In this document: positions 13,819 to 46,732 of the stretch, in pieces
Numbering within the stretch: position 1 is the first letter of the stretch
How the letters are laid out: the number at the start of each line of letters is the position of its first letter
Source: Octopus sinensis
Lineage: Eukaryota
NCBI RefSeq assembly: GCF_006345805.1
Contig: NW_021833418.1
Coordinates: forward strand, 23,445 to 87,444
Direction of reading: 5' to 3'
DNA length: 64,000 nt
Notes under the pieces: generated by a model
What the model saw: the letters and a program-made list of their open reading frames with translations, nothing else
What the model was told of the DNA's origin: nothing
Database searches by the model: none
Made by a program: the position numbers and the translations under genes

Positions 13819-14409
13819 ATGTCAATTGTGCGACTGAAAAGTTGTGACGGTGAGATATTCCACGTACCCTATGACGTAATATGCGTGTCGAACATGCTCA
13901 AGCGGATGTTGGATGGTAGTCCCCTGGCTGACCCCACTAGACCTGGGGATGATGAGTGAGGACGAGGCAGCCCTTCCTCTGCCAAATGTGACGGCAGGAA
14001 TTCTGCGTCGAGTAGGTGAAGGGGGATATAGCTAGATCATAAACTGGTGTACGTATCACAAGGACGACCCAGTGCAGTCGGAGGCCACGAGTCGGTCGAC
14101 GAGGACTGACGATATAATCCCCTACGACCTGGAATTCCTCAAAGTAGACCAATCCACGCTGTTTCGACTAATTTTGGTATTTTGTGTGGCTGACGACAGG
14201 CTGCCAATTACTTGGATATTCAGCCTCTCCTGACGACGTGCTACAAGTACACTGCCAATATGATCAAGGGCAAGACGGCCGAGGAAATAAGAAGACACTT
14301 TAATATTAAAAATGACTTTACTCCCGAGGAGGAAGAACAAGTCACCCCTCCCTTCCATTCCTAGATTCGACGAGAAAACAAATGGGCTGAATTTGATAAA
14401 AATTACTAA
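13819..14409 (+). CDS. SKP1: S-phase kinase-associated protein 1, 5 exons
   Basis: [14 protein letters not shown]...MLDDLG...[25 protein letters not shown]...TLFRLILAANYLDI...[38 protein letters not shown] introns of 25, 24, 23 and 24 nt. Confidence 0.97.
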
Positions 14410-15749
14410 TTTGTTGTCTTGTTTGTCCCCTTCATTCTCCGCTTGCCAAATAATCATAGTTTTAAGCCAATAAATTAGAAATCTGGGTAGGCCCGATCAT
14501 CAAATTTTTTTTTAAAAATCAGATGTTTATATCCCAAATAGCTGAAGAGAAAGAACCACATACCATTTTAAAATTTCACATAATAAAATTATTATTCGCG
14601 TGGATGTCACTACAGTTGTCTATATTCCACAGACAATATTTTGAACAATGATTATAGTTAACCCCGGGAAATTAACCATTTAATTAATTTGAGTAAATAT
14701 CGAATGGCGTCGTATTTTGAAGTTTGTTTAGTCATTGACATTTATTTTCCTTGTTTGCTTGGGAACGCTATTCTGTCTTTTTATGTGAAATTGTTTATTT
14801 TCTGATCTGTCATTTGCTGCGTTCTTTTCTGCAGTTTTATAACTAAAACTTTCAACAATGATTTTGTAGTTATGAAATCAAAGACAAAATTCAAAATTGC
14901 GACATAGTCAAAATTTCTTTTTAGAATAACCAATCAATATGATGCCAATAAAATATATTTAACGAACTCTGTCCTCTATCTATAGGCCAACATGACGGGA
15001 ATAGTAGATCGAGAGGATGTCGAAAGAACAAATTATGGATGTTGTCGTAGATTGAAAACTATCACTCATGATTTAGACATAAATGAGGAATTAATGAGTA
15101 TGGCTGCATTAAAAGGAAGACGTGGTGCAGCGCGACTATACTTAATTTTATAGCTATGTGAACAGTTCCTTTAGAAAACAAATAATTTTCATGTAAAATA
15201 ACAACCGCGTAGTCCATGGAATAAATATTGAGTTTAAACGAAACAAGAATTAAAAGTAACGTCGAAAAATTTAATGAGATTTAAAAAAATTTGTACTCAA
15301 ATAATCACCACATCATTAATTATAATTCTGAACAATTCAGAAAAATTCTTGTGAAACAACTTTACAAACTAGCACATTAAAACAATACGCCAGGAAACCA
15401 AAACTGCACGAATGAACTCGAAATTCCCAGTGAACAGTGTCTGGTTCTGAAAATACATGTATGGAAATAACAAAAGAAACAAGTTTGAAAAGAATCAAAA
15501 GACTTCCTGACCAGATATCCAACTTGTTTAACAAATTACCTCAATTCATTATAATCTATACGAAAAACAAAGAATCAACGATCAATATTATTGGTTTAAT
15601 ATTGTGGTTACATACTTGGTTCAGGTCGACAAAAGTTCTTTCTTTTTTTTTCTCATTGATAAACTTGTCAGAAGAAATGACTGCTAATTTAGTAAATTGA
15701 TGTTTTCCGAATTGTCACAGAAATAGGGCAGGAGTAACGAAAGGATGCT

Positions 15750-15786
15750 AATTATGGGCAGATGTCTATTACAGTGTATATAACAT
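15750..15786 (+). promoter_or_regulatory. Putative promoter of peptide gene A (E-box-containing motif plus TATA-like box)
   Basis: AATTATGG(g/a)CAGATGT and TATAACAT are conserved upstream of both peptide genes (second copy 16470-16518). The TATA-like box starts 27 and 28 nt before the ATG. Confidence 0.55.
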
Positions 15787-15805
15787 GATGAGAAACATGA
15801 CACTA

Positions 15806-16036
15806 ATGAAGTATTTCCTGTTTATTGCATATGTTGCACTCGCATGCTCCAACATGGCAGGATTCGTTATTTATTTTTAGATACAAAACAAGACTGACGA
15901 CACACCATCTCTCAAGGACAAACGAGCTTTAAGTTTTCTGGGGAAAATTTTTGGACCACTCATGAAAAAAATAACAGCACTTGGTAGAGGAAGTTCGGAA
16001 TCTTCCGAAAGTCATTGCCACGAGGAATATAACTGA
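15806..16036 (+). CDS. Secreted amphipathic (antimicrobial/cytolytic-type) peptide precursor A
   Basis: Exons 15806-15856 and 15881-16036, 24-nt GC-AG intron. MKYFLFIAYVALACSNM-IQNKTDDTPSLKDKR-ALSFLGKIFGPLMKKITAL-GR-GSSESSESHCHEEYN*: signal peptide, pro-region, KR site, cationic helix, Gly-Arg, acidic tail. Confidence 0.8.
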
Positions 16037-16538
16037 CCTAATTCGTCTAACAATCTTATTTGTTCCTATATTTTCTGTTGTTTATTATCTTTTTAACGAA
16101 CTTGATAAATTAATTACTTGTAGTAGGAAATCAAAGCGGATGGCGATATCTCTCACCACGTCAAGGTAATTTTCTGTTCCAATTTTTTCCTGAAATAAAC
16201 GCCCAGGTTTTACAAATAAAATGTCGACAGTTTTCTTACCCAAAAAAAGACGTGATGAAACAAAACAAACGGTAATAAAGATGCACCTGACTTGCAATCT
16301 TAGATGGTGGAATATGCAGGAAGACAACTCAAATATAACCGTTGTGAATAAACGTGCACGCTGTGGAGAATGCGCACATTGAATAGTGAATGATAATGAG
16401 GAGTCTCTATTATTGAGTGTAACAGGCTGAATTAGTCAGTGCCGAGTGTACAAGCTAATTAGAGTTGTAAATTATGGACAGATGTGTAACAAATGTGAAC
16501 ATTGTGCATTTATAACATCGTTAGAACATGCGAGGGAA

Positions 16539-44071: not shown

Positions 44072-44518
44072 CTTTTGGCTACTAAATGTGCTTATCTGTA
44101 ATTATAAGAACAATCAGTCTATGTAGGACTAAAGGAACTTTAATAGGATTAGCAATAATTGAAGCAACTTTACGTGGAAAATAACAAATACGGTATCCTT
44201 AAGAGACTGTGATTGACAAAAATGACTCAACAGGCTCAAGTCAACGATTTAGCATTAAAAAACGAGGTGCGAATTGAAAATTCTGTCGAATTCTGATAGA
44301 TATTCAAACAGTAAAGATTTATTGTGAGGAGACTCGAAGCTTGGTGAATAAAATCTCGAAAGTGCAGCACAAAGGGGATCCTAGCTAATTTAAATTCTTT
44401 GGTTGTGTGACATACATTTGGGGCAGACTGGGTGAGTAATGTGGAGGACATGACCCAATAACCAGGAAGTGGCTTAACAGTAGGAATAGCAATAAATATC
44501 CTTATTAAGAGAGGAAGG

Positions 44519-45148
44519 TTACAACACTTTGGACAACTCGGAGAGTCCCTCAAAGATACCGTCGCCGGAAGTGGCGCAGGACTTTTGTAGAATGACAGTG
44601 CGTGAGGCGCGATATTTGTCGAGTGCGAGACTCCTCTCGACGTACTCGATGGACATGACGTTGGGCATATCCTAGGATAGTGAAGGAGAGTACTGATTTG
44701 TTGATAAAGACGAGGAGACTGGCCCCTCTCAACTCGTCACTCTGCATGAGTCCCGCCAACTCGTCACTGGCTTCCCCAATCCGCTCGTGGTCACTCCCGT
44801 CCACGACGAATATGATGGCTAGCCTGCCAACCACACGTCTCACCTCGCACACCCACATAGTAGTGCCGCCACAGTTTACGGATCTGCTTCTGTCCCCCAA
44901 TGTCCCACATCGTGAAGGATATGTTGTTGTACACCACCGTCTCCACGTTGAACCCTTCCTCTCCCCCACACACACATACCCACTGTTGGAATCGTCGTCA
45001 CCACTTCCCCCAGACGCAGTTTGTACAGGATCGTTGTCTTCCCTGCTGAGTCCAGTCCCACCATCAGAATACGCGCTTCCTTCTTCCCCAACAATTTTGA
45101 TATGTTGTTGAACAGGTTCTGCATTACATTCGAAAATGTGCCCCCCAT
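44519..45148 (-). CDS. ADP-ribosylation factor (Arf family GTPase), 4 exons
   Basis: MG myristoylation start, [57 protein letters not shown]. Introns 25, 25, 22 nt. Confidence 0.93.
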
Positions 45149-45299
45149 TACACACCACAACCAACACACGAAACCTTCTTTTATTACTTTTTATTATTTA
45201 CATTACTTTTAATAACCGACCTTATTATTATTAATTATTATAGCCAACTGTTCTACCATATCTCTTTGATTCCAGGAAGTGGCACTTCCCTATGGGCCC

Positions 45300-46290
45300 T
45301 CACTTTTGAAACAGATTGTGATAATAAATTTTAAAGTTATTTGCACTGACTGCATAAGGATCCCATGGATGTGAAAAACAAATCCCTATCCTGCAAGGGA
45401 CAGTACAATGCTTCACGCCGTGGGCCATTATTTCCTTTAGATAACCACTCTGAGGCTAGATCAACATTTTGTTCACATATTTTCTTTGAGCATCTTTGAT
45501 AAACTCAACACCCAAATTCTTCATGTCAAGAATTGCATACTTGGAGGCGAGAAATCCTGCAATTGTGGCCATATGCCATTTGTTTGTATCACACGCAGGA
45601 TTCCCAATCTCCGTAACCATACTGCCGACTGTCTTTCTAACCTTCTCAGGAACTGGAAGAGTATCAATTCACTTCTGAAGGAAACTGAAGCAAGTCCTCT
45701 CCCAAGAGATTTCCGATTTAAATATAGCCTCTCTTTATTTGCAGGTTTGAGATGGAGTCTGAGAGTCGTAAGTTGTCGTATTTGATCAATACAATCAAAT
45801 TCATGAGGTTCAATAAGTCCGATGTAATAATTATACAGAGAAATGGCATATTCATTTATAGCGTGGAATAAGTTGACCGCATTTAATTTCGTCTTTGAAA
45901 GCATGGTTATCCTTTTCTTAACATTTCCAAGGATAGAATCCACTACTCTTAAGGACATTACTTCCTCCATCTTCAAGTACACCTAAATAGTGATATCCTA
46001 AGACTGCTTCCAAAGTCTCGCAACAAGATAACATTTGATGCTGACTTTTCTGAATTCATCTCCAGGCCAACAAATTTAAAGATTAAGACCGAATATCTTT
46101 AGGTCATCAGTGAAGAACAAATGATTAGTAGAGTAGGTATTTGGGTCCTGCTGATTAATTTAAACATTCGGAAACATGCCATTAAGAATCCTGCTTAGTG
46201 GGTCTATCACCATCACAAACAATTGTGAGGATAGCCAGTCTCCTTGTAAAATCCAATTCCCCTTCCGTCAATATGGAGCTTTACAGTTAA
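45300..46290 (-). mobile_element. Internal fragment of the R4/Dong-like RLE retroelement family
   Basis: KKRITMLSKTKLNAVNLFHAINEYA, LHLKPANKERLYL, GNNGPR.EAL; nearly colinear with 19204-22741. Confidence 0.8.
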
Positions 46291-46354
46291 TTTGTTAATA
46301 CAATAAAGAGATTATAATAAATTATTATTAACGTGCATATAGTTGTGGTGGGAC

Positions 46355-46732
46355 ATGGTTCAGAGAGTGCAATTGACGCGTAAGAAGCCTTACAACACGA
46401 GGTCGAACAAAAAGAAAATGTGAGTGAGAGTAGGAGATTGTGTTTATAGTATCCGGACACCGGGAGGCAGACTCACCGTGAAATATCTCACAAAGCGCAA
46501 GTCGATTGTGAAGTGTGCTGTCTGCAAGGACAAACTACGTGGAATCACTCCTGCCAGGCCTGCCACCAAGGCTCGACTGCCCAAGAAGGCCAAGACAGTG
46601 TCGAGGATATTCGGGGGGAATCGGTGTCACAAATGTGTCAAAAATACCATCAAACGTGCCTTCTACATCGAAGAACACAAAATTGTCAAAAAACTGGGCT
46701 CCACTCTCAAGAAACCCGCCGTGGTTGCTTAG
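46355..46732 (+). CDS. RPL34: 60S ribosomal protein L34, 2 exons
   Basis: MVQRVQLTRKKPYNTRSNK...IRTPGGRL...KCAVCKDKLRGI...KTVSRIFGGNRCHKCVK..IKRAFYIEEHKIVKK; 30-nt intron. Confidence 0.97.

Follow-up and report, generated by a model that had tools for sequence, protein, structure and literature searches.

Reversal of GC skew within single genes on a putatively dicyemid contig of an octopus genome assembly

Genes of unicellular fungi carry opposite GC skews at their 5' and 3' ends, which reach four-fold degenerate sites, promoter and untranslated regions (UTRs) and amino-acid usage (PMC3315797). The fungal case is to our mind the nearest described phenomenon to the one presented here, which may be regarded as of the same kind with its polarity inverted. 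It concerns the conserved genes in 64,000 nucleotides (hereafter the window) of contig NW_021833418.1, positions 23,445 to 87,444, from the Octopus sinensis assembly GCF_006345805.1. The coding strand of most of these genes is G-rich in its early part and C-rich in its late part, introns included.

Fungal genes and the genes of the window share a change of sign within genes (here in nine of ten genes at neutral sites, i.e. four-fold sites and intron interiors) and an effect on four-fold sites, promoter or UTR sequence and amino-acid usage at gene ends. Fungal skew varies from gene to gene and is weakly correlated with expression, and C>T deamination was judged insufficient to explain it, with the mechanism left unsettled (PMC3315797). 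Gene-to-gene variation and the insufficiency of deamination recur here. In fungal genes the bias is towards C at the 5' end and towards G at the 3' end, whereas all nine genes here run from G to C, and the amplitude seems far larger here (four-fold skew to +-0.9). In fungi the skew at four-fold sites does not exceed that at non-degenerate ones, and A/T stays level; in the genes of the window the response is strongest at four-fold sites, where A/T also flips. Unlike the fungal genes, these are metazoan, and introns of 20 nt follow the pattern. Inverted polarity, an apparently higher amplitude, an explicit purine/pyrimidine nature and the participation of introns are what is new relative to the fungal case, and the window offers a high-contrast system for the question raised by fungi, namely why GC skew differs between gene ends.

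Human GC skew is located in CpG islands with clusters of G, whereas here the CpG observed/expected ratio is 0.68, runs of G are under-represented, no G-quadruplex (G4) motif is present and the asymmetry lies on the purine/pyrimidine axis. Human genes with GC skew and R-loops resemble those of the window in having positive coding-strand skew just past the start and in the tie of the skew to the transcription unit, but their terminal skew is positive at the 3' end too, where it is negative here (Ginno et al. 2013, PMC3787257). A strand bias at neutral sites that drags amino-acid composition along is shared with transcription-coupled and mitochondrial asymmetries. Mammalian transcription-coupled asymmetry and the replication asymmetries of mitochondria and bacteria are driven by transitions (C>T, A>G), produce an excess of G+T and keep one sign per transcript or replichore; mitochondrial four-fold skew can be equally extreme and position-graded. 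Unlike these, the genes of the window show no shift at two-fold sites and reverse their sign within 0.4-2.6 kb. Replication skew domains extend through intergenic DNA and every class of sequence between origins; here the flanks are at ~0 beyond 100 nt, and the transposable elements (TEs) and low-GC genes of the cluster do not take part. A further parallel comes from ciliates, in which Prescott and Dizick (2000) and Cavalcanti et al. (2004) reportedly described purine-rich 5' strand ends on the gene-sized chromosomes of the macronucleus. There, as here, purines are concentrated towards the 5' end of either strand and the unit is reverse-complement symmetric. The ciliate feature is said to occupy ~50-100 bp beside the telomeres of separate molecules, while here the asymmetry spans whole genes, which are interspersed with TEs on a 64-kb contig, and a search for end signals gave none. 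A literature search found no paper connecting dicyemids with GC skew.

Dicyemids are relevant because the window probably derives from one. It is AT-rich (38.8% GC), its conserved genes form islands of ~50-58% GC and, in our gene models, they are split by GT..AG introns mostly of 17-30 nt. According to the literature, dicyemids and myxobolid myxozoans are the only animals with such ultra-short introns (PMC13644364; PMC6543705), and the genome of D. japonicum has 36.7% GC and 49% repeats (PMC6736024). A LINE of the window encodes a reverse transcriptase with 86-98% identity to proteins that carry Octopus sinensis LOC gene annotation and come from small contigs of GCA_006345805.1, and TE copies in the window are 98% identical to those contigs at the DNA level. 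Because octopus kidneys are the habitat of dicyemids and the TE copies match contigs of an octopus assembly, these contigs are most simply read as dicyemid DNA. Ultra-short GT..AG introns (~20-27 nt in the literature), ~37% GC and octopus association are the dicyemid traits matched. The introns, the GC content and the TE identity thus lend indirect support to the dicyemid origin guessed in the original prediction, an assignment that seems reasonable on this evidence; myxobolid cnidarians, which share the short introns, would be another candidate source.

A switch from G to C along single genes

In 300-nt windows the GC skew reaches +0.4 to +0.58 and then -0.38 to -0.68, in reversals that span 16.8-18.2, 27.0-29.0, 32.2-33.9, 38.1-40.7, 42.0-44.3 and 44.1-45.5 kb. 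We compared G with C at four-fold sites and intron interiors between the first and second half of each gene (Fisher test). A significant switch from G-rich to C-rich was found in nine of ten genes (SKP1, HADHB, HSPA4, CERT1, PLC, the EF-hand gene, USP8-like, ARF and RPL34), with p from 0.03 to 1e-24. Neutral G:C counts change from 93:20 to 18:95 in HADHB (p=1e-24), from 47:3 to 7:34 in ARF (p=2e-14), from 94:40 to 39:115 in PLC (p=2e-14), from 103:79 to 41:124 in HSPA4 (p=2e-9) and from 56:30 to 39:112 in USP8 (p=4e-9); the other counts are given in Table 1. The half-difference D is 0.37-0.61 in HADHB, HSPA4, PLC and USP8, and its 99th percentile in non-genic windows is 0.25-0.26. The switch that had been predicted for HADHB, HSPA4, CERT1, PLC, USP8-like, Arf and SKP1 is therefore confirmed and is stronger than described, and RPL34 and the EF-hand gene join the list. 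Its predicted absence from TEs, AT-rich genes and PSMB2 was borne out by the skew windows, the half test and D.

Four-fold sites respond more strongly than codon positions 1 and 2, so that the possibility raised beforehand, that the effect would vanish at intronic and four-fold sites, does not hold; it is maximal there. Pooled over the genes, four-fold sites hold G.44, A.23, T.15 and C.18 in the first 40% and C.48, T.19, A.16 and G.16 in the last 40%. By successive bins, the four-fold skew of HADHB is +0.93, +0.64, -0.26, -0.93 and -0.59, and that of its introns goes from +1.00 to -0.89. ARF moves from +0.93 to -0.56 at four-fold sites and from +0.80 to -0.80 in introns. HSPA4 begins at +0.81 and +0.78 and is negative from there to the stop codon, reaching -0.78, and the last bin of PLC reaches -1.00 (C at 29/29 sites). 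The C-rich tail of PLC passes the stop codon and ends at ~40650. Pooled introns have G.36 and C.14 early and G.11 and C.40 late: early introns are G/T-rich and nearly free of C, late introns C/T-rich and nearly free of G. Local G:C ratios are as high as 27:1. The two HADHB introns first singled out as examples had correct sequences and G/C counts, but the supposed intron 1 is only a possible GC-AG intron and the supposed intron 6 is the fourth or fifth in our model. Should the pattern hold across the genome, few nuclear strand asymmetries known to us would be stronger: the silent G:C ratio swings between roughly 20:1 and 1:20 inside a single gene.

These results rest on eleven rebuilt gene models, ten of them tested at free sites; the evidence covers this one window with ~11 genes plus four host-gene exons on other contigs (~15 genes in all). 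Reading frames were anchored by alignment to solved structures (Sse1/Hsp110, PLC-beta, USP8 and GALC), small genes by recognisable conserved peptides, and introns were then placed by anchor-guided dynamic programming. Homology-free chaining of open reading frames (ORFs) over-chained AT-rich DNA and kept wrong frames in C-rich DNA, and was replaced by the anchored models. It fails in the C-rich halves because stop codons are rare there in all frames, a difficulty that standard gene finders may share. The true C-terminal frame of USP8 is far less rich in Ser, Pro and Thr than the frame picked by plain ORF reading. The placement of some intron borders may be off by a few bases, and PLC, the EF-hand gene and GALC lack a defined N-terminus, which leaves the size and sign of the effect unaffected. 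No close protein homologues of the host genes were present in the searched collections: the nearest to HSPA4 has 36% identity, the ARF search gave generic ARFs and ten ORFs were without an entry.

The asymmetry is of purine/pyrimidine type and confined to transversions. The purine share at four-fold sites falls from.68 to.33, while at two-fold sites G/(A+G) in purine-ending codons goes from.62 to.57 and C/(C+T) in pyrimidine-ending codons from.62 to.68, neither change being significant. The pattern can be described as a purine-to-pyrimidine gradient that multiplies an even preference for codons ending in G or C. As two-fold sites show no early/late shift, the switch cannot be driven by transitions such as C>T or A>G deamination. 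A signature of CpG methylation was likewise rejected, CpG and GpC being equally depleted. Early and late four-fold compositions are complements of each other, so that the 3' part is compositionally the reverse complement of the 5' part; in introns A/T does not follow this mirror rule, both halves being T-rich. ARF, on the minus strand, behaves on its own coding strand like its plus-strand neighbours. A sequence whose left part is rich in G and whose right part is rich in C looks alike from either strand, and the pattern is therefore uninformative on gene orientation.

The borders of the pattern are close to those of the coding sequence. GC content climbs no more than 100 nt from the ATG and falls off at the stop codon. 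Pooled flank skew is +0.19 over ~100 nt upstream (positive in 7/9 genes); over the first 100 nt downstream it is slightly below zero (-0.10), and farther out it is ~0, so that the pooled flanks show no mirrored skew outside genes. Single-gene flanks are clearer, with C-poor, G/T-rich leaders and, in most genes, C/T-rich trailers (to ~170 nt in PLC). Neutral sites put the switch point 107-1150 nt from the ATG, which corresponds to 0.24-0.66 of gene length, and its distance grows roughly with gene length, by which a switch at fixed distance is rejected. The same range lends no support to the periodicity of ~1 kb that had been proposed together with two G-to-C cycles in HSPA4 and USP8-like. In HSPA4 the second cycle is not seen at four-fold sites (-0.46, -0.62); two G-rich introns are its only hint, and the second rise of the all-site skew stems from first codon positions. 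The proposal holds in part for USP8-like, whose four-fold skew by bin is +0.46, -0.29, +0.65, +0.48, -0.29 and -0.94 (the dip of -0.29 rests on n=28), and whose second G-rich block overlaps a lineage-specific purine-rich repeat insert.

Amplitude differs between genes and correlates with GC content at third codon positions (GC3; rho 0.63, p=0.012, n=15). Among the genes examined the pattern is confined to GC3-rich ones; PSMB2 (GC3 0.55), which lacks it, is an unexplained exception. Low-GC3 GALC, inside the cluster, has a weak switch or none. No switch was found in the low-GC3 host genes PP2C, UEV/E2 and M20 peptidase, which lie on other contigs, from this genome or one very close to it, nor in transposon ORFs, GC-rich ones included, or the AT-rich genes between the skewed genes. 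One GC-rich transposon family serves as an internal control: its GC content equals that of the skewed genes, yet it lacks the switch.

The bias extends to proteins. Gly (1.9x), Trp, Arg and Val are enriched early, and His, Pro, Phe, Gln, Ala, Thr and Leu late. From the amino-acid shift originally proposed, Gly and Val early and Pro, His and Leu late are upheld, whereas Glu (ratio 1.02) does not respond and Ser (1.19) goes in the wrong direction. Amino-acid choice is overridden even within conserved catalytic domains (USP, the C2 domain of PLC and the substrate-binding domain of Hsp110). Such a bias along proteins bears on the long branches that dicyemids form in phylogenetic trees.

Possible causes of the asymmetry

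We tentatively favour reading the pattern as the near-equilibrium footprint of a strand-asymmetric substitution bias that is bound to the transcription unit and has opposite polarity early and late in the gene. The bias would arise from mutation and/or repair acting on the transcription unit, with a polarity that differs between its early and late parts; it would be diffuse, act at the DNA level and be strong enough to drag protein composition with it, as mutation pressure does in mitochondria; and a uniform preference for G/C-ending codons would be superimposed on it. That the effect is maximal at four-fold sites and introns, is confined to genes and skips TEs and low-GC3 genes argues for this reading, as do the mirror symmetry, the restriction to transversions, the correlation of amplitude with GC3 and the fungal precedent. 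The lack of a motif-level signal also fits diffuse compositional pressure: G is dispersed, runs of three or more G are fewer than expected (92 against 116+-7) and there is no G4 motif, which also led us to reject G-quadruplexes or G clusters as the basis of the pattern. A kb-scale strand-asymmetric mutation or selection process acting on genes including introns, as the original prediction had it, is hence supported, whereas none of the four mechanisms it named (R-loops, pre-mRNA pairing, replication forks and gene-sized excision or amplification) gained specific support.

Several points weigh against a transcription-bound substitution bias. Its link to transcription, and its mutational rather than selective nature, are what we infer. 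In the transcription-associated asymmetries known so far, transitions (A>G, C>T) predominate and the bias is modest and does not reverse, while here the two-fold sites, at which only transitions are silent, are unshifted and local G:C goes to 27:1. PSMB2, a housekeeping gene, lacks the pattern. The switch tracks gene length, which fits a two-ended process better than a simple early/late regime of RNA polymerase II. Finally, the sample consists of only ~11 genes of one window and the four exons elsewhere.

That the pattern is an artefact, chance or the product of protein- or codon-level selection alone is next to impossible. Wrong frames in C-rich stretches do inflate Pro, Ser and Thr, as in the USP8 C-terminus before its frame was corrected, but introns and flanks share the pattern, conserved domains are intact, and p values down to 1e-24 at four-fold and intron sites refute this idea. 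Selection on transcription or pre-mRNA, in which a purine-rich start and a pyrimidine-rich end are themselves useful, is unlikely but has more in its favour. The benefit could be stable rPurine:dPyrimidine hybrids early and weak ones late, which would aid termination in a compact genome, a ramp of purine nucleoside triphosphates (NTPs), or pairing of the 5' and 3' parts. The pattern is indeed limited to the transcription unit, introns and UTR-like flanks included, and its purine/pyrimidine axis matches the properties of RNA:DNA hybrids and the distinction of purine and pyrimidine NTP pools. There is a precedent in the adaptive NTP-ramp model of McLean and Tirosh for fungi, in which the limiting NTP is enriched at the 5' end and which takes the form of a CTP hypothesis (PMC3315797); here purines would be limiting. 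Pairing receives some support from composition alone, which joins the 5' and 3' parts in ~35% of the predicted base pairs of HADHB, against 0-6% when the 3' half is complemented, so that the halves of strongly skewed transcripts would still be able to pair in this way. Specific complementarity was rejected, and the pre-mRNA pairing proposed earlier gains no support, since folding energies of mRNA and pre-mRNA match those of composition-preserving block shuffles (z -1.6 to +0.9). R-loops fare no better: G is not clustered as in R-loop initiation zones, and G/(A+G) at two-fold sites is constant along the gene. Selection would also have to override amino acids in conserved catalytic domains and to leave both intron halves T-rich, against the mirror rule. 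In a parasite of small population size, selection that is weak at each site should have little effect, so that a four-fold skew near 0.9 would be hard to reach by it.

The dependence of the switch point on gene length turns attention to processes that act from both ends. One would be strand-asymmetric biased gene conversion from breaks at the nucleosome-free ends of active genes. The heteroduplex at a transversion holds purine-purine or pyrimidine-pyrimidine mismatches, the latter, especially C-C, being poorly repaired according to the mismatch-repair hierarchy of E. coli and yeast; purine alleles would then be favoured on the strand that runs 5'>3' away from the break, while transitions would give strand-symmetric, GC-biased conversion. 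Such conversion would explain the even GC preference at two-fold sites with a transversion-only, mirror-symmetric skew, the excess of G/C over A/T asymmetry, the correlation of amplitude with GC3, the heterogeneity between genes and absence from TEs, and the scaling of the switch point. It also predicts mirrored skew outside each break, whereas the pooled flanks are flat beyond 100 nt, and GC enrichment ends sharply at the start and stop codons; we regard it as decidedly unlikely. Convergent sense and antisense transcription, in which a 3' antisense promoter makes the bottom strand the non-template there and the same bias is written both ways, would account for the mirror symmetry, the confinement to the gene, the length dependence and the upward jump of skew between the two 3' ends of the convergent USP8/ARF pair. 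No shared inverted promoter-like motif was found at 3' ends, however, and the 3' half of ARF is C-rich though read-through from USP8 would run the opposite way, which makes this explanation improbable. Replication forks converging inside genes, with an origin per intergenic region, or gene-sized somatic molecules with purine-rich 5' strand ends fit the mirror symmetry and the upward jumps between genes; dicyemids are also reported to eliminate chromatin, amplify DNA selectively and make circular DNAs (PMC6543705). Even so, the skew has ended by ~100 nt outside the coding sequence, passes over nearby TEs and low-GC3 genes and is of purine rather than keto type. Gene borders hold no shared k-mer, boundary motif or terminal inverted repeat above shuffle expectation, the circular contigs published for Dicyema contain mitochondrial protein domains only (PMC6543705), and somatic DNA shapes germline sequence only through selection. 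The tight confinement to single genes additionally disfavours both fork convergence and gene-sized molecules, and we consider them very improbable. More generally, each GC3-rich gene might be worked on from both ends by a DNA-level process, be it break-initiated repair or conversion with strand-dependent mismatch correction, or somatic units with purine-rich 5' ends, with a reverse-complement-symmetric purine-loading domain as the result. Although we think this unlikely, such a gene-sized domain, if real, would form a new class among nuclear compositional domains. It would rewrite not only silent sites and introns but conserved protein domains too, and would add a new route from repair polarity to protein composition.

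Features of the window and side observations

The genes and control elements of the window are listed in Table 1.

Table 1 Genes and control elements of the window (neutral, four-fold sites plus intron interiors; G:C counts are first half -> second half; PDB, Protein Data Bank)
Feature	Position	Strand	Gene model	Skew along the coding strand
SKP1	13819..14409	+	4 introns	G-rich to ~14189, then C-rich; neutral G:C 30:15 -> 13:24, p=7e-3
HADHB (thiolase)	16851..18382	+	7 introns and a possible 24-nt in-frame GC-AG intron	switch ~17649
HSPA4/Hsp110	27228..29824	+	10 introns; PDB anchors to Sse1	G-rich 27228-27860; extreme C-rich block ~28430-28830
CERT1-like (PH and START domains)	32320..33972	+		switch ~33401; neutral G:C 52:19 -> 34:59, p=4e-6
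PLC-beta-like	38104..40477	+	11 introns; PDB anchors; N-terminus uncertain	switch ~39242
EF-hand (calmodulin/light-chain-like) gene	41484..41929	+		weak follower; neutral G:C 12:10 -> 4:16, p=0.03
USP8-like (rhodanese and USP domains)	42125..44071	+	PDB anchors	main switch ~43271
ARF	44519..45124	-	convergent with USP8	5' half G-rich on own coding strand; switch ~44775
RPL34	46355..46732	+	1 intron	small follower; neutral G:C 19:6 -> 8:14, p=9e-3
PSMB2	2236..3010	-	conserved housekeeping gene; GC3 0.55	no switch; neutral G:C 17:30 -> 21:26, p=0.53
GALC-like	~23449..25714	-	poor model, N-terminus unreliable; low GC3 0.47	switch weak or absent; D=+0.11, four-fold delta +0.12
LINE-type reverse-transcriptase element	19251..22947	-	control; 98% identical copies in loci L002 and L004	mild even G>C, no switch

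Several of the genes carry internal repeats or unusual introns. The possible 24-nt GC-AG intron of HADHB lies at 17041-17064; its excision matches the spacing of human HADHB, yet the frame is also open on read-through. In CERT1-like an in-frame tandem repeat occupies 32822-33304 (48 bp x 10.1, copies 98% identical, 16-amino-acid unit VDYSEDCPYRGDITAQ). It is located between the PH and START domains and looks like a very recent expansion; one copy seems frameshifted in the gene model. HSPA4 has a 36-bp x 2.3 repeat at 29719-29802, just 5' of its ...MDID C-terminus. The purine-rich low-complexity repeat insert of USP8-like lies at ~42770-43130, between the rhodanese and USP domains, with a 33-bp x 2.9 core at 42939-43036. 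The 5' exon of the EF-hand gene was not found in gene modelling, and PSMB2 has an unusually long intron of ~80 nt. GALC-like aligned to galactocerebrosidase over residues ~12-165 only and its middle seems shortened or decayed; a C-terminal lectin-like end also seems present, judging from a comparison with the GALC sequence.

Two paralogous AT-rich small genes are found at ~15786-16030 and ~16540-16735 on the plus strand, each with one short intron and a signal-peptide-like N-terminus (MKYFLFIAYVALACSNMAG... and MKYLILIACIAMACSNMA...). Both seem lineage-specific and lack the skew switch. Scans for Rfam families and tRNAs gave no match. TATA-like boxes occur 20-35 nt 5' of the ATGs at 27228, 13819, 46355, 16851 and 32320; lying so near the ATGs, they imply 5' UTRs of only a few nt, i.e. 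near-leaderless mRNAs.

Seven further loci (L001-L007), reached via shared TEs, contain mostly transposons and few low-GC3 host genes. The GC-rich (50-60%) transposon family is represented in the window at 8100-8700, 5400-5700, 6150-6450, 50400-50700 and 63000-63300, and elsewhere in L003 (5928-7703) and L005 (8132-9499). LINE copies at 19200-22741 and 48383-52231 of the window match L001, L002 and L004 (VCDQ01005537.1, VCDQ01010235.1 and VCDQ01010661.1; GCA_006345805.1) at 98%. The reverse-transcriptase ORFs of those contigs carry octopus LOC gene annotation, which resembles dicyemid DNA within a cephalopod assembly and its RefSeq annotation; the skew could help to flag dicyemid contigs within cephalopod assemblies.

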